In this document: piece by piece, positions 28,683-44,081 of the stretch
Layout: the number at the start of each line of letters is the position of its first letter
Position numbering within the stretch: position 1 is the first letter of the stretch
Assembly: GCA_048013815.1 (NCBI GenBank)
Contig: CM106585.1
Span: forward strand, 14,694,001 to 14,758,000
Direction: 5' to 3'
Length of the DNA stretch: 64,000 bases
Source: Setoptus koraiensis
Taxonomy: Eukaryota; Animalia; Arthropoda
The notes under the pieces: generated by a model
The model's database searches: none
What the model saw: the letters and a program-made list of their open reading frames with translations, nothing else
What the model was told of the DNA's origin: nothing
Translations under genes and position numbers: made by a program

Positions 28683-31600
28683 ATGGACGAGCAACAGCAG
28701 CAGGGCCAGATCTCAGTCAGGGTGGCCATCAGGATTCGGCCCCAGATAAGCAGAGAAAAGATCGATATGTGCCAAATATGCACCAGTGTTACACCCGACG
28801 AGCCACAGGTTTGGCTCGGCAAGGATAAGGCTTTCACATTTGATTATGTTTTTGATACAAACTCACAACAACAAGCAATCTATGACACCTGTGTTAGAGA
28901 ACTAGTGGAGGGCTGCTTCAACGGCTTCAATGCCACGGTGCTCGCCTACGGTCAAACGGGCTCTGGCAAGACCTACACCATGGGCACAGGCTTTGAACTA
29001 AACACAACAACGGCCAACAACAACGAAGCAACAACCGAACTCAACTCAACGCATAATAGTAATAATCATCATCATAATAATAGTCACGGCATAATTCCAC
29101 GCGCTGTTCAACAGTTATTCGATGGCATTCAAACGAGACGCGCCGGTCCCACCACTCCAGAATTTAAAGTGACTGCACAATTCATTGAATTGTACAATGA
29201 AGAAATCATTGATCTCCTTGCCGATGGCAAAAAATCAACACAAATACGAATACAAGAAGATAATGGAGGTATTTATATAGCAGGCGTTGCATCCCGTCCA
29301 GTTGCGTCAGCCGACGAGGCCTTTGATTGTTTGAGAGCGGGAGCGTTGGCTAGAACAACTGCATCTACACAAATGAATACACAATCATCTAGGTCGCATG
29401 CTATTTTCACATTGCTCATCAAACAGAATCGTATATCAGAGGATCCAGATTGTCAGGAGTTAGAGATGTTGAGCGCCAAATTTCATTTTGTTGATCTGGC
29501 CGGCAGCGAAAGACTCAAAAGAACAGGAGCCACAGGAGACAGGGCCAAGGAGGGCATCTCAATCAACTCGGGCCTCCTATGCCTGGGCAATGTCATATCA
29601 GCTTTGGGCGACAAATCAAAACGAGCCACACACATTCCATATAGAGACTCCAAATTGACTAGGTTGCTACAAGATTCATTGGGAGGCAATAGTCAAACAT
29701 TGATGATTGCATGCATATCACCCTCGGACAGAGATTTTATGGAGACATTGAGCACACTGAGATACGCTAATAGAGCCAAAAATATCAAGAATAGAGTGAC
29801 AGCTAATCATGACACTGCCAGTCATACCATAGCCGTTCTTAGGAAGGAAATTCAAAATCTTAAATTGGAATTGCTTGAACTAAGACAAAGCAAAAGTATG
29901 TGTGTTTGCAACGCTGAGCGAAACAACGATGACATGTCAATGGAAGACACTTGTTCGGAGCTCAGGAAGCAAGTTCAACGTAATAGTCTATTAGCTGCAA
30001 GACTTTCAATAGACAGCAACGGAATCCACGAAGATTTAGCAGAGGTGTCCTCGGACAAGGTTATCGAAGAGGCTAAACGAGAGGTGAAGAAGCTCAAGGC
30101 CTACACAAAACTAATATCAGAAAACAATGTCTCCATGGACGTTGCTACCAATGGTCCACCACCACCGCCTTTAGATTTGCCTAATAATTTGGAGGAGAGT
30201 GGTGGTAGCAACGAGACTGACGACGAAGAAGCCATCCTTGATAGTAGCGAGGAAGTATCAGAAGATAATGGCAATGAAAGTATAGAGGCGGCGAAAATTG
30301 AGTTGGCTAATTTGAATGATAATATATCTGTAAAAGAGAAACTTATCGCCGAGCTAGAAAAGAGCCAAAGAAAAATGGAATCTCTTAAGCATCACTACGA
30401 ATCTAAATTGATTCAGTTGCAAAATCAAATAAATGAAATAGAACGCGAGAGAGATCAGGTTATGGCTAAACTCAATCAAAGCGGACCGACTGAGAAAACT
30501 CGAAAACTCAATGAAGACTATGACAAAAAGATCAAAGCACTACAAAACGATGTCAAGAAATTGCAAGAGGCCAAGAAAGAGCATGCCAGCGCAATGAGAA
30601 GTCAAGCACGTTATGAACAACAAATCAAAAAATATCGAGTTGAAGTAGAAGATATGAAACGTCAAAAAGTGAATGTGATGAACAAAATGAAAGAAGAAGC
30701 CCAGCGTCATCGTGAAAGTGAACTTCGAAACACAAAGAAGATTGCGCAACTTACAAAGCAAGACCGACTGAAAGACGTCAAGATTAGGAATTTAGAAGTT
30801 GAAAACAACAGAGTGAAACAATTCCTCAAGAGACGAGATGCTGAGGTGAAAGCCTTAAAAACTAAAGGTAAGCCCATGAGTGAGCGAGTAGCTGGGCGTA
30901 CCAAGGAATTCAATAAAGCACCTATGAATCATCAGAGGAGAGGTAAGCCCTCGCCCAAAGCTGCCAAACATAAATGGAATAGATTAGAGCACGAGATCAA
31001 TCAACTTATAGTGACCAAGCAAACAATATGGAACTACGACCAACAAATGAATCGTGACATAGCCCAGCGTGAAGAATTAAGTCAGCAACTTGAAGAGGCC
31101 ACTAGTAGATTGAAAAGTGCTAAAATGAGCAATAACAAAGAACAACTCCAGAGTCTCAATGAGGATATAGATGCCATCCGATCTAACATTAACTATATCG
31201 ATCAAAACGTCAGAGAGTATCAATCAACCATATTGCAACTTGAGGATGATCTCAAAGATGATGCCGATGTGCCTAATCTAGAACATATAATAACCACGTC
31301 CGACAATATGGAAATTAAATATCTCTTCCAGAAACTGTTATCAATGCTAATTAGTCAAACCCAGCAAGTTGATTCATTGTCAGAGGAATGTCGCCAATGG
31401 CAGTGCAAATACAAGCAAGTTGCAGATACTAGTCGAATAAAAGAAGAGCTTTTAGATCATCTGATGGCGTTGAAAACGTCAGAAGAGAATGGGTCCACCG
31501 AGACATTTATTGTACCTGACCCAGTGGAACTGCCGATACCTAGAACTCAAGTTCAACCCCAAACCCTCCATTCAATGGCACCACCACCCCCTATTAACAG

Positions 31601-33847: not shown

Positions 33848-35511
33848 TTTTATTGGACTAGTATCTGCAGTTTGCTTTTATTTGCATTGCTATTGGCAAC
33901 ACTCTGACAATGAATCAACTTGCTGGGTTTGACTGATTAGCATTGATAACAATTTCTGGAATAGATAATTTAAGTTACATATTGTGGAACGTGGTTATTA
34001 TATGTTCTAGATTAGGCACATCGGCATCATCTTTGAGATCATCCTCAAGTTGCAATATGGTTGATTGATACTCTCTGACGTTTTGATCGATATAGTTAAT
34101 GTTAGATCGGGTGGCATCTATATCCTCATTGAGACTCTGGAGTTGTTCTTTGTTATTGCTCATTTTAGCACTTTTCAATCTACTAGTGGCCTCTTCAAGT
34201 TGCTGACTTAATTCTTCACGCTGGGCTATGTCACGATTCATTTGTTGGTCGTAGTTCCATATTGTTTGCTTGGTCACTCTAAGTTGATTGATCTCGTGCT
34301 AAAATTAATATTACTATTCCATTTATGTTGGGCAGCTTTGGGCAAGGGCTTACCTCTTCTCTGATGATTCTTAGGTGCTCTATTGAATTCCTTGGTACGT
34401 CCAGATGCTCGCTCACTCATGGGTTTACCTTTAGTTTTTAAGGCTTTCATCTCAGCATCTCGCCTCTTGAGGAATTGTTTCACTCTGTTGTTTTCAACTT
34501 CTAAATTTCTAATCTCAACTTGTTTCAGTCGGCCTTGCTCAGCAAGTTCCGCAATTTTCTTTGTATTTTTGAGCTCACTTTCACGATGACTCTGGGCTTC
34601 TTCTTTCATTTTGTCAATCACATTAACTCTTCTTCGGTCTATATTCTCGACTTCAACACGCAATTTTTTGATTTTTCGTTCATAACGTGCTCGACTTCTC
34701 ATGGCGCTGGCATGCTCTTTCTTGGCCTTTCGCAATTTTTTGACATTGTTTTTCAATGCTTTGATTGTGGTGTCATAGTCTTCGTTGATATTTTGAGTTT
34801 TCTCGGTGGGTCCGCTTTGATCGGCTTCTTGTTGTATCTGGCGTTCTATCGCATCTATTCTCATTTCAAACTTAAACAATTCAGATTCATAGTCATAGTC
34901 ATCTTTGGAAGAATACATTCTTCTTTGGCTCTTTTCTAGCTCCGCGATAAGTTTTTCTTTTACAGATATATTATCATTCAAATTAGCCAACTCAATTTTC
35001 GCCGCCTCTATACTTTCATTGCCATTATCTTCTGATACTTCTTCGCCACTATCAAGGATGGCTTCCTCGTCATCAGTCTCGCTGCTACCGCCACTCTCGT
35101 CCAAATTAGGCAGATTTAAAGGCGGTAATTTCAAACAAGTGTCAATTCGTGTCCGAGGGTGATATGCATGCAATCATCAATGTTTGACTATTGCCTCCCA
35201 ATGAATCCTGTAGCAATCTTGTCAATTTGGAGTCTCTATATGGAATGTGTGTAGCTCGTTTTGATTTGTTGCCCAAAGCTGATATGACATTGCCCAGGCA
35301 TAGGAGGCCCGAGTTGATTGAGATGCCCTCCTTGGCCCTGTCTCCTGTGGCTCCTGTTCTTTTGAGTCTTTCGCTGCCGGCCAGATCAACAAAATGAAAT
35401 TTGGCGCTCAACATCTCTAACTCCTGACAATCTGGATCCTCTGATATACGATTCTGTTTGATGAGCAATGTGAAAATAGCATGCGACCTAGATGATTGTG
35501 CATTCATTTGT
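33848..35511 (-). pseudogene. Inverted, internally deleted partial duplicate of KIF21 (pseudogene or young derived gene)
   Basis: 35511-35150 matches 29369-29730; a 10-nt island matches 29946-29955; 35126-33848 matches 30164-31442. Frames are broken at the block junction, by a net +8 nt change near 34300 and by stops from 33977 downward. No P-loop and no WD40 tail. Confidence 0.88.
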
Positions 35512-37488
35512 CATTGGATCTTGAATCGATTTTAAATAGATTTTAGATTGATTTCAGTTGGTCAAAAAAAGAGAAAAATGACCCACTCAATCGAAGCGCT
35601 TTAAGTGGCAAGTTAGTGGGTGAGGGCCAAAGTCGCTCTCGCTCGGGAGCGACCCGGGCGAGAGGCTAGTCGCAACTCTATAGGCACACAAGGACCTAAA
35701 TGATCCGTGAATACCAGTGAAACTCATCGACATTTGGGACTCCCAATTCGGGGTGCAATCATACCGAGACTGGGCGTGAAACGTAAACCGCGATCCCGCG
35801 CCGCCCAAGAGAGAGAGAGAGAGAGAACGAGGCACGAGTGAAAGTTTCAATTGATGAGAGTTTATTAGATTGTGTGTTCGCAATGATAATAATATGTTAT
35901 GTGTTTGTTTCTAATAATTTAATAGTAATCTTTGCATGAGCGTATAGATAAGTGTCATCAATGATGTGTTTGGGTTCTAATAATATTATGATGGCCAGGG
36001 CAAGGGAGCGACCGTAATGGTGATTAAGTTTGTGTGCCCTTGTGCCTCTTCAATTAGAATATATCTACTAAATTTAGAATGTGTGTATCTTACAATGATG
36101 TTCTTTTGCTTGACAAGCTCGCACTACATATAAGTGTTTGTTGGCCACAAACAAACAAACATTACAACAAATAATCAACTTGAATAGGTATATTCATCAG
36201 TGGTAATTGGTCTTGATTGTGTTTTGATATTGTGTTGTCGATAATCGTTGTGTTTGTGTGATTGTGTCAATTTGTCCTATCATCATCATCATCATCATCA
36301 TTTATGACGGGACTAATTATAGTGTACAACTAAAATTTGTTTCTTTGTCTTTGTTTCCACTTGTTGTAACCGTATGTACAATGATAATAATTGTTTCTTC
36401 TTTATACACCTGTATGCAAACCAACCGAGTACACGTTTATAACACTTGTAACTAGCAAACAGTTGATGTGTCAAGCCTTTTTTCGTAAGAGAAACAGAAA
36501 GAAAGCAGCAAAATTGGATACACTTTACATTATATACAAATTGTCATGAGTGCTAGTTGTAAATATATGTTATAATATTCACAGTACTATCTGTACAGTC
36601 GACACATTTATAGTATCATTAGTTAACTTGATCTTAGAAAAAACAATCTATGTGTAGTAATCATTAATTGACGATCATTATTATTATTACTATTATTCAA
36701 ACATACTAAAACTAGCTAGGCCCGCGCTAAGATGATATTGTGGTTGCGTTGCATTGTTGTTGTTGTTGTTGTTGTTATATTGTGGTTGTCGTGTGTCTAT
36801 TGTTTGTCAGCAGCAACACCAACAGCGGGTAACGATGACAACAGCACGAACACAACAACGACGACGACGACGACAACAGCACAGGTTAATTATTGATAAT
36901 TAATCATTTATTGTTTTCAACCATTCACTATCCACTTTGCCCAATCAATTATTGTGAGTGAAGTGGCAGTGTCAGTGTTGTCAACCAGTCACAATCAGTC
37001 TGGCACAAACTCGCTCTCGCATGTTTGCATATCATTGATATAATAATCAGACTGTCGGGCTGTCGGGCTGTCGGGCTGTCGGGCTGTGTGGTTGCGTGAG
37101 ATTCCTTTCAATAGACTCCTTGTTATTTATTGATCAATCCAGCGTGTAAAAGGCTTCTTTGGCTATCGCTTTCGTGATTGTGATCGTCGTGCGCTTGAGG
37201 CTTGTCGTCAGGTGAGGTGGGTCTTGGATTGATAGTGTAACGATATACGATATTAACGCATGCCATGTTACGGCATGCCAGAGATGAAATGCTGTGTGAG
37301 TCTCACTGGCGCCCAATGCACTTGTTTGTTGTTGTTTATGACGATCATTAGTGTGTTCTCGACAACAACAATTGTAGATGGGGCGCTCAATCAATCATCA
37401 GAGAGATACTAAGAGATAATGAAGGTCACCACCGAGCGACCAACATTGCCGGCCAGAACAAATCAAATAGATATGCAGCAGGAACAGA

Positions 37489-38825
37489 TTATCTCTTGAT
37501 TCGTTTGGCCTCTCGGCGTTCGTTCTTCAACGATTGCAACTTATCTATATTGGATCTATCACTGAGCCACAATTGCATCCTAATGAACGGCTCGCGACCC
37601 TTTATAGACAGCATATGCCAGGGCTTTGGCTTGGACAGTAGCTCGCTCACGGATCCCTGAGACAGTCCCAGCACCACCTCGCCAAATATCTTTTGGCCTA
37701 TGTTGTGTGCCAACAGTGTTTCCTTTATGCGAGTCGTAATAGTTGGCGTGTCCATATCGGGCGTTAATGCGGCCATTTCATAAACGGAACTAGGCTGAGC
37801 AAACACCGACGACGGACTACTAATGGCCGACAGCATGTGAGATGGCGACGACGAATTGAGATTCATGTGTGAATTATTTGATGAGGACGATATAGATGAT
37901 GAGCTAGAGGCAGGCGACATTATAGAATGATATCCACTACTAGCCAATCCTGTGCCGCCGCCTGTGCCTGTGCCGCCGCCTGTGCCAGAATTGGTTAATG
38001 GGGCCCCACTTCCGGTGCCCGCAGTGTTCAACTGTTTGGATTGTTGTTGGCTACTGTTGTTGTTTAAATTGGCATTACTATTAGAGGAACTGAGTGTTGA
38101 TGACTTGTTGTTGTTGTCCACCGACTGCTGCTGGTCGCTGTTGTTCATTAACGGTAGTGCTGGCGTGTGGGCCGATCTAGACGACGACAGGGGAGATCCG
38201 GGATTTGAGTTGTTGTTGTTGTTTAAATTGTTTGATGACTTACTGTTGTTGTTGTTGGTTAGATAATTGTTTAGGTGATTTGAGGATGATGAGTTGTTGT
38301 TGTTTGCCGACAACGCGCTAGTTATATTCAATTGTTGATTGTGAATATGGTGCAACTTGTGATGATGATTGTGATGATGATTCAACAGTCCGTTCAATGT
38401 TGCATTGACATCCCGCGAGCTCCTTGTGTCCACCAGTGCGCCCACGGACAAATCGGGCTCAGAATCAGAATACTGACCACCGATTAGGCTACCGTTTGGC
38501 GATTGAGCAGCGAGCCTGTTGTTTTGGTTGTTGTTGTTGGCATTGTTGTTGTGTTGCTGGCCCGACATTGACATTGAATCATTATTGCCGCTACCGTTGT
38601 TCTGGCTATTGATTAGCCTGTCCAAATTTGAGGCACTCTGTTGCAGGCCCAAATGAAGGGGTAAGTGTGACGAGGAGCCAGTTTGTTGTTGTTGTTGTTG
38701 CTGTTGTTGCTGTTGGGCCAGGGTGGCCGCGGCCACGGCCAAATTATACTGGCCCAAATGCTCGAGATGCAAATTCAACTGTTGCAGGTACAGCTCTTGC
38801 GCGCTCGCCTTGCCCAGCTGACCGG
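37489..38825 (-). CDS. cut: cut/CUX, final visible coding exon (CUT repeat 3, then stop)
   Basis: Acceptor tcgagcag|CC (phase 1). CUT3: [77 protein letters not shown] follows KNERREAKRIKR. Confidence 0.9.
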
Positions 38826-39021
38826 CTGCTCGACGAAACGAACCAATAATGAAACGGATAAAATCACAGAGAAAAAGAGAGTTAGTTATAGTTACATAAA
38901 ATAGTAGAGTTAATCGTAATTGATGATGTATTATCACTGATATTTGCATAATCTCCGATAATTTATCAGGATAATTTACCAGAGATTACGCAAATGTCGC
39001 AATGTGGGACTGGTTGCTCAC

Positions 39022-40437
39022 CTGAGGCTGAGGCTGCGGCCGCCGCCAAGCTCGACTGCAGGTTCTTGAGGCTGGCAGCGCTGCTTGCGGCTCCAAAGGA
39101 GCTCTGATGTTGCTGTTGTTGTTGCTGTTGCTGCTGTTGTTGGGCCACCAAGCTCGCCAACAGACTCGGTATGCTGGCTGCGGCGGCCGCTTGGTGCATT
39201 TGCTGATGAGGTGACGAATGTGAATGGGAACCGGGAAGACCCGCCAGGGCGCTTGCAAATGGATTGTGACTAATGGGGTGGGAGTGCGGGCCGGCGGCCA
39301 GTGCGGCCGCGGCCATCGCTGGACTCAAGTGACCGTGCATTGAGGGATGATACGAGTTGGCGCCGGTGAGATGGCCCAGCCCGGCGGAATGAGCTCCGCC
39401 GCCAGCGCCGCCTGCACCACGACCACCGCCCAGCGCACCGCCCGACGAGCCGGGCGGGCCCGCTGGCCCGCTTGGTCCGCCACTTCCGGTTGCTGCTGCA
39501 GCTGCCGCTGCGGCGGCCGCAGCGGACGCGTGCACGCCGCTTATAAAACCGCCCGTGCGCATCAGTTTCTCTGGGGCAATCTTGTATTGGCTGGCCACTA
39601 GCTTGTGTACGGCGTTTTCGTCCTCTAAAAACATTTTCATCCGGATAAATGGCTCGCGACCCTTCTGTGTCAGCATGTGCCACGGCTTCGGCCTGGCCAG
39701 CAAATCCGACACGGAGCCCTGCGACAGGCCTAACACTGACTCGCCAAATAACCGCTGACTAATGGAGTATTGGCTCAGTTGATCTTTCACCTTTTTAACA
39801 ATTTCCTCCGTGTGCATATTGCTGTACTGATCAAACTGTTGTTGCGTTATAGGTGGCAGCACCGCCTTGGCGGGCCGCTGCGGCTGAGAGGGCGGCGGCG
39901 GTAACGTCGACTGGGTCAACAGGTTGTTCGTAATGGATTGCATTCGTTGCAGGGGCGACGACAGATCCTCTGCGCCCAGGCCCATGCCTGCCAGACCCGC
40001 CAGCGGTCCGCCCGGTTGCTGGGCACTCTGCTGGCCGGTCGCTGGCTGGTTGGAGGAGCCCACTGGTGTGCCCGCGTGACCGCCGACATTCTGACCGCCT
40101 ACGACGCTTTGTGAGGCTGCTGCGGCAGCGGCCGCGGCCGCCACGGCACCGCTCGAGACTAGGGGCGCCAGCGGATTATTGACAACGTCCAGTGCGCTTA
40201 AAATGGGCCCGACACTGTCGGGTAAGTCGCCGGGCAAGCTGAGTTGCGTCGAGTGACCGGCGACGCTATTTGGTACGGGGGTGTTGCTGTTGCTGCTGCT
40301 GCTGTTGCCGTTGCTGCTGAGGTGGCTCGATTGGGCATGATAGGGGTATATGTCGGACTCGAGGTTGCTGTCGTTGTCGGACAGGTCGTCTACGGAGGAC
40401 GAGTTCAGTTGTTGTTGCTGCTGATGATGTTGTTGCT

Positions 40438-40472
<35 letters not shown>

Positions 40473-41941
40473 TGTTGCTGATTGAATATGGGCGATTTTT
40501 GCAGTTCGTTCAATATAGACGCAAACTGTTCGGTGTCCATGGCACCGGAAGCGAGTGCTGGAAAGCACGATTGCAGCAATTGTTGCACAATGGCCGCTTG
40601 AGTGGCGTCTATAGGCATCTGTTGTTGTTGTTGTTGTTGTTGTTGTTTTTGGGTCGACATTTGCAGCTGATCGAGTTGCTGTTGTTGTTGTTGTTGTTGG
40701 TGGTGGTGCTTTTGCTGTTGTTGCTGCTGATGGTGATGATTGCTTGCGGACAGCAACTGCTGCTGCTTGTGATGGTGCCCGTTAAAGGCACTTATGGGGT
40801 ACGGTGAGGGTGGGTAGTTTGTTGTTGTTGAGTTGTTGTTTTGTTGTTGAGGAGATTGTTGTTGCTGTTGTTGAGCCACTGTTGTCGTTTGGTTGTTGTT
40901 GTTGTTGTTGCCGTTATTATTATCAGTAGAGGGCGCGTTGGGCGCGAACGCGGAACCACCCTTGCGGAGTGCGGTCGATTTGAGTACCTGAACGCATGTC
41001 TCGTCTTCGGCCCAAGCGTGCATTTTTCTGTAGGAATCGCGACCCTTCTCAGTGAGCTTGTCCCAGGGCTTGGGCTTGCTCAACAGCTCGCTCACCGTTC
41101 CCTGCGACAGACCCAATACGTATTTTGCAAACAATCTCTGGCCTATATTGTGGGCAGACAATAGCTCGCGAACAATACGCGATATGTTTGAGGTATTTAA
41201 ATTCTCTGTCATATGTTTCTCTACATTAGAGCGGAGATATTCTTGAAGTTTGTCAAAGGACGCGGCGCGCAAATGATTATTATGATGTTGTTGCTGCTGC
41301 TGCTGTCCTATGGCTGCTGTCAAACTGCTGTCAGTTGTTTGATGTGACAGTTGTTGTTGTTGTTGTTGTTGTGATGCAACATGAGATCGCGTCACAGCAC
41401 CTGTCAGATTGTGTGCCTGCTGTTGTATTGGCTGCGGTGATTGCCTATTTATGGCCGATGATTGTTGCTGTGATTTGTTGTTGTTGTTGTTGCTGCTGTT
41501 TGTTTGTGTTTGCTGCTGCTGCTGTTGTTGTAATTGTTGTTGCAACGGCTGGCCTAATTGTGATGCAACCGAGGCTGACAACATTGACGATATGACAGAT
41601 AATTGTTGCTTGTTGGCACCGGCACCCGCTGCTGCTGCCGCTTGCTGCAATTGGTTCTCGATCGATGCGCCAACTAAACTGCTGGCCGACAGGTGCCGCT
41701 GCTCTGGCTGCTGCTGCTGACCAATGGAATTGGCCAAGGTCGAATTTATCAAATTGGCAAATTCGCTTCTCAACAGGCTCACCTCGTGCTTCAGTTCGTC
41801 GTAGTCCTGCTGCTTGATTAGCTTTGTCTTCAAATCGTTAATTAGTGAGTTCTTTTCGTTGATGATGTTGCGCAACTCGTGCAAATCGTGCAACTGCGAA
41901 TAGTCAAGCGATGAGTCGCTGTCTTGCGTTTCCTCTTGTTT
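39022..41941 (-). CDS. cut: cut/CUX large internal exon (CASP-type coiled-coil end, CUT repeats 1 and 2); 5' boundary 41941 or 41893
   Basis: [18 protein letters not shown] coiled coil, CUT1 [38 protein letters not shown]2 [34 protein letters not shown]. Donor TCAG|GTGAGC at 39021. Two in-frame phase-0 CAG acceptors (before 41941 and before 41893). Confidence 0.92.
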
Positions 41942-42347
41942 CTGTTGATGATGACGTTGATAATTGTCATGTAATGACGGTGTCGCAATCACAATGTTGC
42001 AATCACCAAGTTGTAACGTGCAAATGGAAAATGACGAAATGAATGGTTAGATTGGAATCAAATCAAATTGGTTGTTTCGCTATCGACAGGCCGCGTCCAA
42101 GTGATCGGCTGCGGCCCCCCGTTCGATCGACATTTGCATTCGGCTCACATGCACTGTGTTGCTGTTTTGTAGATGGTGCGCGCGCACACAATTTTGACTT
42201 GTTCTCAAACTTGTTCGCGAACGCTGACTGTGTGAGAACGAGTCGCGCAAAGGGGGAAACAAACGCACTTCTCACACTCACAATCTCAGTGTTCTCGCTG
42301 CCCCCTCGTTTTTACTCTCGCTGGCAGGGCGAGCGCGAGTCGCTAAT

Positions 42348-42499
42348 CGCCGATTCGTCGAATCGCCGAATCGCCGAATCGTCGGATCGCCGAATCGCCG
42401 AATCGTCGGATCGTCGGATCGTCGAATCGTCGAATCGTCGAATCGTCGAATCGCCGAATCGCCGAATCGCCGAATCGCCGAATCGCCGAATCGTCGAAT
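42348..42499. repeat. Tandem 8-mer array CG(C/T)CG(A/G)AT, 19 units
   Basis: Direct reading; lies about 400-550 nt upstream of the cut exon acceptor. Confidence 0.95.
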
Positions 42500-44081
42500 C
42501 GGGTTCGGCGTTCGACGGAATCGGCGGGCCGAAGCCAGCCAGCCAGCAGAACCCATTCGATGCCACTGGTGAGCCCTCTCTGGGTGGAACTGGGCACTAA
42601 AATTGTAGTCTAAAAAGCGGCCGGAGCCGCTCGCATCGGGCCATCAAAATTGACCATAATTAAGTGTATGTTGTATGTCATCATATGTCATCTGTAAGAG
42701 ACGATACAACTGTGTCGAGTGTGTGTCATAATGGCATCATGACATGGGACAAAATGGGCGCCTATCAGCAGCAGCTGATGGGCAACAAAAGAAGTCGAGC
42801 AAATCTTGGCCGCTTGGCCGATTGCAATTCTAATTGGATCTGGATTGTGAAAACTGGATTCACTTTGCAACATTCGAGGCTCGAACCGATCTGACTGCGC
42901 ACTTCATTCAATTGCGTTTGCCGTCGTTGTTGTGGTTGTTGTTGTTGTCCATTATCCATCATGATGCGCCATCATCGGGCAATAGTCGATACTGGTGTGC
43001 CGGCACCGGCTAGGGGCGCAACAACAACAGCAACAACACTAGCAACAACACCAGCAACAACACCAGCAACAACAGCACCAGCAACAGCGACAACAGCAGC
43101 AACAGCAGCGACAACGGCAACAACAATGGACACGAGGGCGCAAGACGGAGCCTATCAATCACTGTTGTTTTGTCGGCGCGTCATCGAACGGATCACACAA
43201 TCAAAATGTTGATCCACTTTTGATGATTCTTTGTTTCCATTGTGTGTCCAGCTCGCACACCAGATTGGCTGCATAATAGTCTAGCAGCCAACTGGCGGCC
43301 AGACTATTATGCAGCCAATCTATTATGAGATGGGCTGATAACAATAATTGTTGTTATTGTTGATTTGTTTGTTGACTCGCCATCTGACGGATAGATGGCC
43401 GAGCGGAGGCCAAGTGTTTGCGTATGTTTTAAACACACACACTTACACACATTTCATTGAGATTATTTCAACGGTCAAATTCAACTGTCTCGCTACATTT
43501 CAGTCAGTTTATAGTGAGTTTTACGTTGATGTAATGTCACACAATGTCGACAGTATTGTCATTTCATTGTTTGCTGTGTGTGTGCCATCATTATCATGAC
43601 AATTGATTGCATGACGATGACAATTGCGCTCATCATATATCACAGCCAGCAGCTCGACTTATCAGCGGTTTTGTTGCTTGTATCGGCCAGTAATGATGGC
43701 CGACACACATTGAAACATTTCAGCCGGGGCGTTGCTCGCTCTTGCAACTCGCTCTGCATAGCAATCTGTGAATCTCTGCCAATCTCTGTCTATAAATATA
43801 CGTATGTATGAATATATACCCGTTTGCATGAATATGTATGAATAGCAACAATGTCAACAACATGACAATATCACACAATCGTCAATTGTTGCACTGACCA
43901 AATGACCTGGCGACAAATGGCCACAATTTGGCGACTGAGCTGCCACATGACGCAATGGCCATTTGGCGCATCCTGTGGCGGCAGCCTCGCGAATCACAAA
44001 TTGCCAGTCGTGAGTGCTCGATGGGCCGATATGACCGGTCCGGCCGACAACATTGCCCGGCGACACCTGTTGCACGATGCT

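Follow-up and report, generated by a model that had tools for sequence, protein, structure and literature searches.

The cut gene on the minus strand of a 64-kb stretch of Setoptus koraiensis DNA, referred to here as the window, was found to encode three CUT domains (Pfam) and then to terminate at a TAA codon. The stop is genuine, ancient and common to several mite lineages, no homeodomain lies in its vicinity and all three CUT domains remain intact. Cut/CUX is among the textbook homeobox genes, and the mite cut gene is a homeobox-class gene that has lost its homeobox, a condition for which PAX1/PAX9 and CERS1 are precedents. We consider it highly probable that the window gene is the cut/CUX orthologue of an eriophyoid-type mite clade and that it is secondarily devoid of everything past CUT3. 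An original prediction, made from the letters of the sequence, had proposed that this lineage uses a naturally homeodomain-less Cut, and the proposal was supported by the presence of the same stop in relatives and by purifying selection. The features of the gene and of the adjoining DNA were as follows.

39022 to 41992, minus strand: large exon with a coiled-coil-like N-terminal part, CUT1 and CUT2 (ORF of 1008 aa; two Pfam CUT matches).
40958 to 41260, minus strand: CUT1 domain, approximate limits (tblastn with the CUT1 regions of mite Cut proteins, 70-79% identity).
39596 to 39826, minus strand: CUT2 domain (best Pfam stretch, residues 723-799; 92-98% identity to arthropod CUT2).
38829 to 39021, minus strand: intron of 193 nt, GTGAGC...AG, between the CUT2 and CUT3 exons (read from the sequence; frame restored).
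37492 to 38828, minus strand: last coding exon, with a low-complexity linker, CUT3 and a basic tail (ORF; acceptor AG at 38830-38829, phase 1).
37540 to 37758, minus strand: CUT3 domain (Pfam PF02376, E 5e-27, ORF residues 398-470).
37489 to 37491, minus strand: TAA stop of Cut, directly after ...KNERREAKRIKR (unchanged in the X1 and X3 contigs described below).
36907 to 37131, minus strand: probable end of the 3' UTR, with two AATAAA motifs (motif scan; 357 and 576 nt past the stop).
33902 to 35511, minus strand: recent partial inverted duplicate of the adjoining KIF21 gene (inverted repeats to 29369-31385, 87-98%).

The PF02376 matches were located in two minus-strand open reading frames, with CUT3 (E 5e-27) in ORF 37489..38949 (486 aa) and CUT1 plus CUT2 (E 3e-54) in ORF 38966..41992 (1008 aa); these are joined across the phase 1 intron, which runs from a donor at 39021 to an acceptor AG at 38830-38829. 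Each CUT domain of the window was closest to its counterpart in arthropod Cut (tblastn), and the core LGLSQG(S/T)VS-(E/D)LL-x-(K/R)PKPW was retained in each, indicative of intact domains. The last coding exon exhibited 78-83% identity to the CUT3 of arthropod Cut proteins (tblastn), and the closest solved structure to CUT3 was 1WH8, a human CUX2 CUT domain (E 5e-36), while ONECUT structures matched the window gene at only E 3e-10. We take ONECUT proteins to consist of one CUT domain and a homeodomain, SATB proteins of a CMP, two CUT domains and a homeodomain, and COMPASS proteins of a CMP and two homeodomains. With its three CUT domains and with best matches that were all to Cut/CUX, the window gene falls into none of these classes.

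As for the N-terminal coiled coil that CUX-class proteins have in common with CASP, positions 41756-41971, towards the 5' end of the large exon, exhibited weak but consistent homology (E 1e-5 to 8e-7) to the pre-CUT1 region of Cut from mites, ticks and horseshoe crabs. No in-frame ATG was present near the 5' end of this exon, and nothing significant was detected in a search for N-terminal exon(s) upstream of 41992. A tandem repeat at 42300-42600, just upstream of the exon, was open in three minus-strand frames and one plus-strand frame and gave peptide repeats such as SAIRRFGD and NRRIAESS. At the other end of the gene, the frame holding CUT3 was confirmed to end in ...SLKNERREAKRIKR followed by the TAA at 37491-37489. 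The conserved KNERRE-basic tail was present after CUT3, homology to other Cut proteins extended through ...LQSLKNERREAKRIKR and ended at the TAA (tblastn), and the protein terminated 4 residues into the basic, KR-rich stretch downstream of CUT3.

Comparison with the cut orthologues of related mites, one of the checks proposed with the original prediction, demonstrated that the stop position was common to four other genomic lineages and to a protein of Aceria tosichella. The C-terminal end ...KNERREAKRIKR was shared by the window, by five further loci (L001 to L005) and by A. tosichella A0A6G1S7J5. These loci are labelled eriophyoid-type on the basis of their similarity to A. tosichella. L003, L004 and L005 were added by a scan of JGI metagenome contigs, in which L003 lay on a contig of 43.7 kb and L004 on one of 95 kb; the L005 sequence was identical to that of L004. 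Two proteins recovered by an exhaustive protein search, P0152 and P0154, also ended exactly at ...KNERREAKRIKR, and in their contigs this end was followed by TGA (L001) or TAA (L002) and then by DNA alignable neither between the two contigs nor with the window. The stop codon was TAA in the window, L002 and L003 and TGA in L001 and L004/L005, and the 3' flanks past the stop could not be aligned between lineages.

The UniRef entry A0A6G1S7J5 of A. tosichella, an eriophyoid, is named 'Homeobox protein cut', but CUT was the only kind of domain in it, and it terminated in the same C-terminus. This entry is presumably derived from the published A. tosichella transcriptome assembly and would, if so, be the sole expression evidence. 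No contig was returned by an exact-protein look-up of A0A6G1S7J5 among contigs, and with the whole A. tosichella protein as query no eriophyoid orthologue beyond P0152 and P0154 was present among the matches listed. The complete cut genes of L003 (L003:2329-6876) and L004 (L004:4658-10315) each consisted of one uninterrupted ORF, of 1516 and 1886 aa, with three CUT domains and no Homeobox (Pfam). The 193-nt intron of the window was absent from both, and hence intron presence varies within this intron-poor clade. The first 10 kb downstream of cut in L003 and L004 contained no homeodomain, and neither did the 930 nt that separate cut from the following gene in L001.

Outside this clade, most Cut proteins retained the homeodomain. 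Among the matches listed, 180 of the 189 Cut proteins with the CUT3 tail motif had WF.N.R after the tail, and the only ones ending 12 or fewer residues past the tail were three eriophyoid-type proteins. Only these three, among the 189 matches listed, had AKRIKR instead of the usual ANKRRR; an AKRIKR-then-stop C-terminus may be a simple sequence marker for the eriophyoid-type clade. A homeodomain was also retained by other acariform mites (Dermatophagoides, Oppia, Leptotrombidium and Dinothrombium), and in other mites CUT3 and the homeodomain are present in one reading frame.

The age of the truncation was apparent from the coding sequence preceding the stop. Across the final 100 codons, the five genomic lineages exhibited an amino-acid identity of 91-100% and a third-codon-position identity of 0.41-0.63, and over the last 112 codons (Nei-Gojobori) pN was 0.08-0.10 versus a pS of 0.62-0.84, the latter being saturated for comparisons of the window with the others. 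High amino-acid identity combined with near-saturated third positions is therefore indicative of purifying selection on the C-terminal part of Cut. The truncation predates divergences with saturated synonymous sites. As in PAX1/9, the window gene combines retention of another domain and absence of a homeobox with purifying selection.

The phylogenetic position was examined with a quick maximum-likelihood search, in which several rows had an unusual amino-acid make-up and the stem branch was long. The window, L003 and L004 formed one clade (SH-aLRT 100), which was nested in a 7-row group of acariform-mite Cut only (SH-aLRT 100), a placement consistent with descent from the arthropod cut orthologue. 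Three CUT domains, as in the CUX class, were present in all three of these genes. The simplest reading is that there was a single loss in the clade ancestor, probably from an exon holding CUT3 and the homeodomain together, an arrangement that persists in the majority of other arthropod loci. The branch at the base of the homeodomain-less clade had 1.97 changes per column versus a median of 0.53 for end branches; this long stem reflects either faster evolution after the loss or generally fast eriophyoid evolution. Outside the CUT domains, the eriophyoid-type Cut proteins were almost unalignable between lineages.

All eriophyoid-type sequences found in the protein searches (among the matches listed) and in the metagenome scan lacked a homeodomain, and the homeodomain-bearing loci carried insect, oribatid, dust-mite or crustacean signatures, with none being eriophyoid-like. 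These data make it unlikely that a full-length, homeodomain-bearing cut exists elsewhere in the genome and that the window locus is a truncated paralogue, specialised as an extra, CUT-only copy. The genome was visible only as a 64-kb window, and the matches listed were the best 120-150 of thousands of Cut proteins, so that a divergent eriophyoid copy with a homeodomain could hide. Against such a copy, however, the homeodomain-less clade was located inside acariform-mite Cut in the quick tree, as expected for an orthologue, and the genes of L003 and L004 were complete, with three CUT domains, rather than fragments. A search of sequencing runs for this stretch found DNA-like contig sets and no RNA run, and contigs of four public runs were compared with window positions 35000-39400. 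The CUT3 depth was a single contig in both X1 and X3 at a likeness threshold of 85%, and there was therefore no second close copy in the X1 or X3 assembly at this level of likeness.

The secondary loss of the homeodomain from the orthologue itself was consistent with searches of the window. A CUX-type homeodomain has the pattern KK.R.LFSEEQKEAL...TITNWFHNHRMRLKQ-like, with His50, and in other arthropods its NWF motif occurs only 81-126 residues downstream of KNERRE. As had been claimed, no homeodomain was present in any frame: W[FY].N.[RK] was absent from all six frames of the 64-kb window. A tblastn search of the window with 12 full-length arthropod Cut proteins detected nothing beyond the CUT repeats and no homeodomain match. 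An HMM built from 119 Cut homeodomains was run against the 2,768 six-frame ORF pieces of at least 12 aa in the window, and the best E-value was 0.22, for a piece upstream of the gene. The same HMM, as a positive control, recovered the homeodomain in 42 of the 45 Cut loci of other animals in the metagenome contigs, where it follows CUT3, mostly in the same ORF, and so the negative result for the window is meaningful. The Cut-type homeodomain that lies C-terminal to CUT3 in the CUX class was thus not found in the 64-kb window.

A second part of the same claim was that there is no strong splice donor between CUT3 and the stop, and this also held. From 70 nt before the end of the coding sequence to 80 nt beyond it, the only GTs were GTTGCA, GTTGAA, GTTCCT, GTTCTG, GTTGGT, GTCGCT, GTGGTG, GTGACC and GTATCT, none of which resembled the actual donor of the gene (GTGAGC at 39021), and no conserved GT donor was present ahead of the stop among the window and its relatives (five lineages). 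Read-through of the stop was considered separately and rejected, as the in-frame extensions were wholly different between lineages and the alignment collapsed exactly at the stop.

It is very improbable, given the absence of a usable or conserved donor between CUT3 and the stop in five lineages, that a homeodomain is supplied by an exon lying over 37 kb downstream or on a different chromosome, through unusual splicing or an alternative isoform without the CUT3 exon. Joining of the donor at 39021 to another acceptor is conceivable, but the cut genes of L003 and L004 were single intronless ORFs extending to the same stop, with other genes next on the same strand, and in L001 the next gene started 930 nt past the stop. 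No homeodomain fragment was present in the window even among 12-aa ORF pieces. Furthermore, CUT3 and the homeodomain share one exon in most other arthropod loci, and the ancestral arrangement therefore needed no splice.

Read support for the TAA, a further check proposed with the original prediction, was obtained from contigs of two independent runs, X1 and X3, which were identical to the window at 37489-37491. The X1 contig (2,647 bp) covered 35471-38125 and had its own substitutions and indels, none of which was at the stop. The X3 contig (921 bp) covered 37058-37978 with a single difference, at 37194. The downstream DNA was also the same in these independent contigs. The occurrence of the same TAA and flank in independent contigs is therefore not due to a sequencing or assembly error. 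A recent inverted duplication is 2 kb away from the stop, and microsatellites and indel polymorphism occur in the region, but the alternative of artefact or decay (faulty sequencing or assembly, a nonsense allele restricted to one strain or an incipient pseudogene arising after the KIF21 rearrangement) has a negligible likelihood and is refuted, as far as DNA evidence can do so, by the TAA being identical in two independent runs with a contig carrying its own variants bridging 35471-38125, by three CUT domains all scoring far above the Pfam thresholds, and by purifying selection and a stop position common to lineages that have saturated synonymous sites and CUT domains of 91-100% identity.

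The DNA past the stop had been described as 1.9 kb of AT-rich 3' UTR leading to a KIF21 duplicate. The base composition (GC 0.41 for 36001-38000) and the position of the duplicate, which starts at 35511, 1,978 nt after the stop, agreed with this description, but the 3' UTR of cut is probably much shorter than 1.9 kb, since AATAAA motifs are located 357 and 576 nt past the stop. Triplet or short-unit repeats were present at 36747-36900, 37040-37100 and 38380-38680 (a GTT/GTC run, a (CAGCCCGA)n run and the CAA/AAC-rich coding linker) and exhibited a very high summed contig depth with many false joints. The (CAGCCCGA)n run differed by a 16-nt indel between sequencing runs, and indel polymorphism was observed near the 3' end of cut at 37052, 37361 and 38292.

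The KIF21-like kinesin duplicate consisted of five collinear blocks with 87-98% identity to the parent and lacked the parent segment 29731-30184, and this level of identity indicates that the duplicate is recent. The X1 and X5 contigs broke or continued differently at 35511, and this boundary may be polymorphic or may have been confused with the parent copy. A suggested link between the loss of the homeodomain and this neighbouring inversion/duplication was unsupported: the duplicate, unlike the truncation, is of recent origin, and different genes adjoin cut in the relatives. Downstream of cut and on the same strand, L003 had an MFS transporter followed by a PDZ-RhoGEF (L003:8311-15555), and L004 had a PDZ-RhoGEF followed by PP1 (L004:13153-18735). 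In L001 an MFS gene (L001:1929-2558) began 930 nt after the cut stop. No MFS transporter, PDZ-RhoGEF or PP1 was found in the 64-kb window. As the gene order 3' of cut differs between lineages, this region has been rearranged repeatedly. The sequence comparisons thus indicate that the KIF21 rearrangement is real but apparently unrelated to the loss of the homeodomain, being far younger than the truncation.

Reviews define Cux genes by three CUT domains upstream of a homeodomain (PMC10515288; PMC4901127). The mite protein resembles the CUX-class proteins (Drosophila Cut, human CUX1/CUX2 and C. elegans CEH-44) in having three CUT repeats in the same order and a KNERRE-basic tail after CUT3, and possibly also in its N-terminal coiled-coil-like part, but differs in having neither the homeodomain nor the C-terminal region. 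With its CUT repeats and no homeodomain, it is similar to the engineered C1C2 and C1C2-NLS forms of CUX1 and to the CR1CR2 binding mode of full-length CUX1; in mammals, a protein made up of CUT repeats alone associates with DNA and leaves it rapidly (PMC8231510). Unlike these laboratory constructs, to which an NLS had to be added because the homeodomain was absent, the mite arrangement is natural, is conserved throughout a clade and has both CUT3 and the N-terminal part. PAX1/PAX9 and CERS1 are, similarly, members of homeobox families that remained functional after secondary loss of the homeobox (PMC2211742; PMC4901127), and in PAX1/PAX9 the other DNA-binding domain of the family is retained. 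The Pax loss, however, defines old paralogue families that exist beside homeodomain-bearing paralogues, whereas the mite loss appears to have occurred in the only cut orthologue.

Two other products lacking the homeodomain were compared with the mite protein. CASP, an alternatively spliced product of CUX1, is derived from a CUX locus and has no homeodomain (PMC10515288), but it also lacks all of the CUT repeats and is a Golgi membrane protein, whereas the mite Cut retains three CUT repeats. A Cut mRNA from a marine metatranscriptome (L021; proteins P0162, P0195 and P0209) has CUT3 and no homeodomain. In contrast to the mite Cut, which is cut off after CUT3, this type misses only the homeodomain segment and keeps the RRKPAAPQW tail. 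The L021 sequence (L021:602-3727 of JGI contig Ga0307382_10001041) was mRNA-like, with an AATAAA and an A run at its end and an ORF of 1042 aa, and P0162 represents 22 member sequences. It looks like a crustacean-type Cut whose homeodomain segment is missing through exon skipping, a different deletion or the existence of a separate homeodomain-less gene.

Under the preferred reading of a secondary loss in the orthologue, the part lost would have comprised the linker, the Cut-type homeodomain and the C-terminal tail with the RRKPAAPQW motif conserved in other arthropods, and the retained product would be a coiled coil with three CUT repeats, probably maintained by purifying selection. The likely mode of DNA binding was deduced by analogy with the biochemistry of mammalian CUX1 (PMC8231510). 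In CUX1, a single CUT domain does not bind DNA, and combinations containing the homeodomain bind more slowly and more stably (PMC8231510). C1C2-NLS accelerated the repair of oxidative damage and stimulated OGG1 without transcriptional activation (PMC8231510). On the basis of this CUX1 literature, transient DNA occupancy and CUT protein contacts are expected of the mite Cut. Pairs of CUT repeats could still bring a homeodomain-less Cut into contact with DNA in the fast-on/fast-off CR1CR2 mode, resulting in a competitive, 'CCAAT-displacement'-like occupancy, while the slow, stable CR3-homeodomain complex would not be possible. Protein contacts made by the CUT domains, such as those involved in the stimulation of base-excision-repair enzymes, could persist. 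The mite Cut would also be without the carboxy-terminal domain that in CUX1 holds transcriptional repression domains, and its retained basic tail, KRIKR, may act as a nuclear localisation signal.

A natural CUX orthologue devoid of a homeodomain was not mentioned in the literature consulted. [quoted passage not shown] The cut gene is not discussed in that paper, and its supplements contain neither CUT nor PF02376. Homeobox genes are unmentioned in the A. tosichella genome preprint; a transcriptome assembly of this species (Gupta et al. 2019) is cited in PMC7738191. We think it probable that the whole eriophyoid-type lineage is without any CUX-type homeodomain and runs the role of Cut with a protein containing only CUT repeats. 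If true, this would be the first natural CUX orthologue without a homeobox, and the loss in cut would add a developmental regulator to the known losses of transcription-factor domains in eriophyoids (Hairy Orange, PMC7738191). The CUT repeats were constrained long after the loss of the homeodomain and C-terminal region and therefore have a selectable function of their own. Until now, the case for an independent function of these repeats has been based mainly on engineered C1C2 proteins in mammalian cells, and these mites would, if this reading is true, provide a ready-made test of the functions of Cut that need the CUT repeats alone, such as transient CR1CR2-type occupancy and an accessory role in DNA repair.
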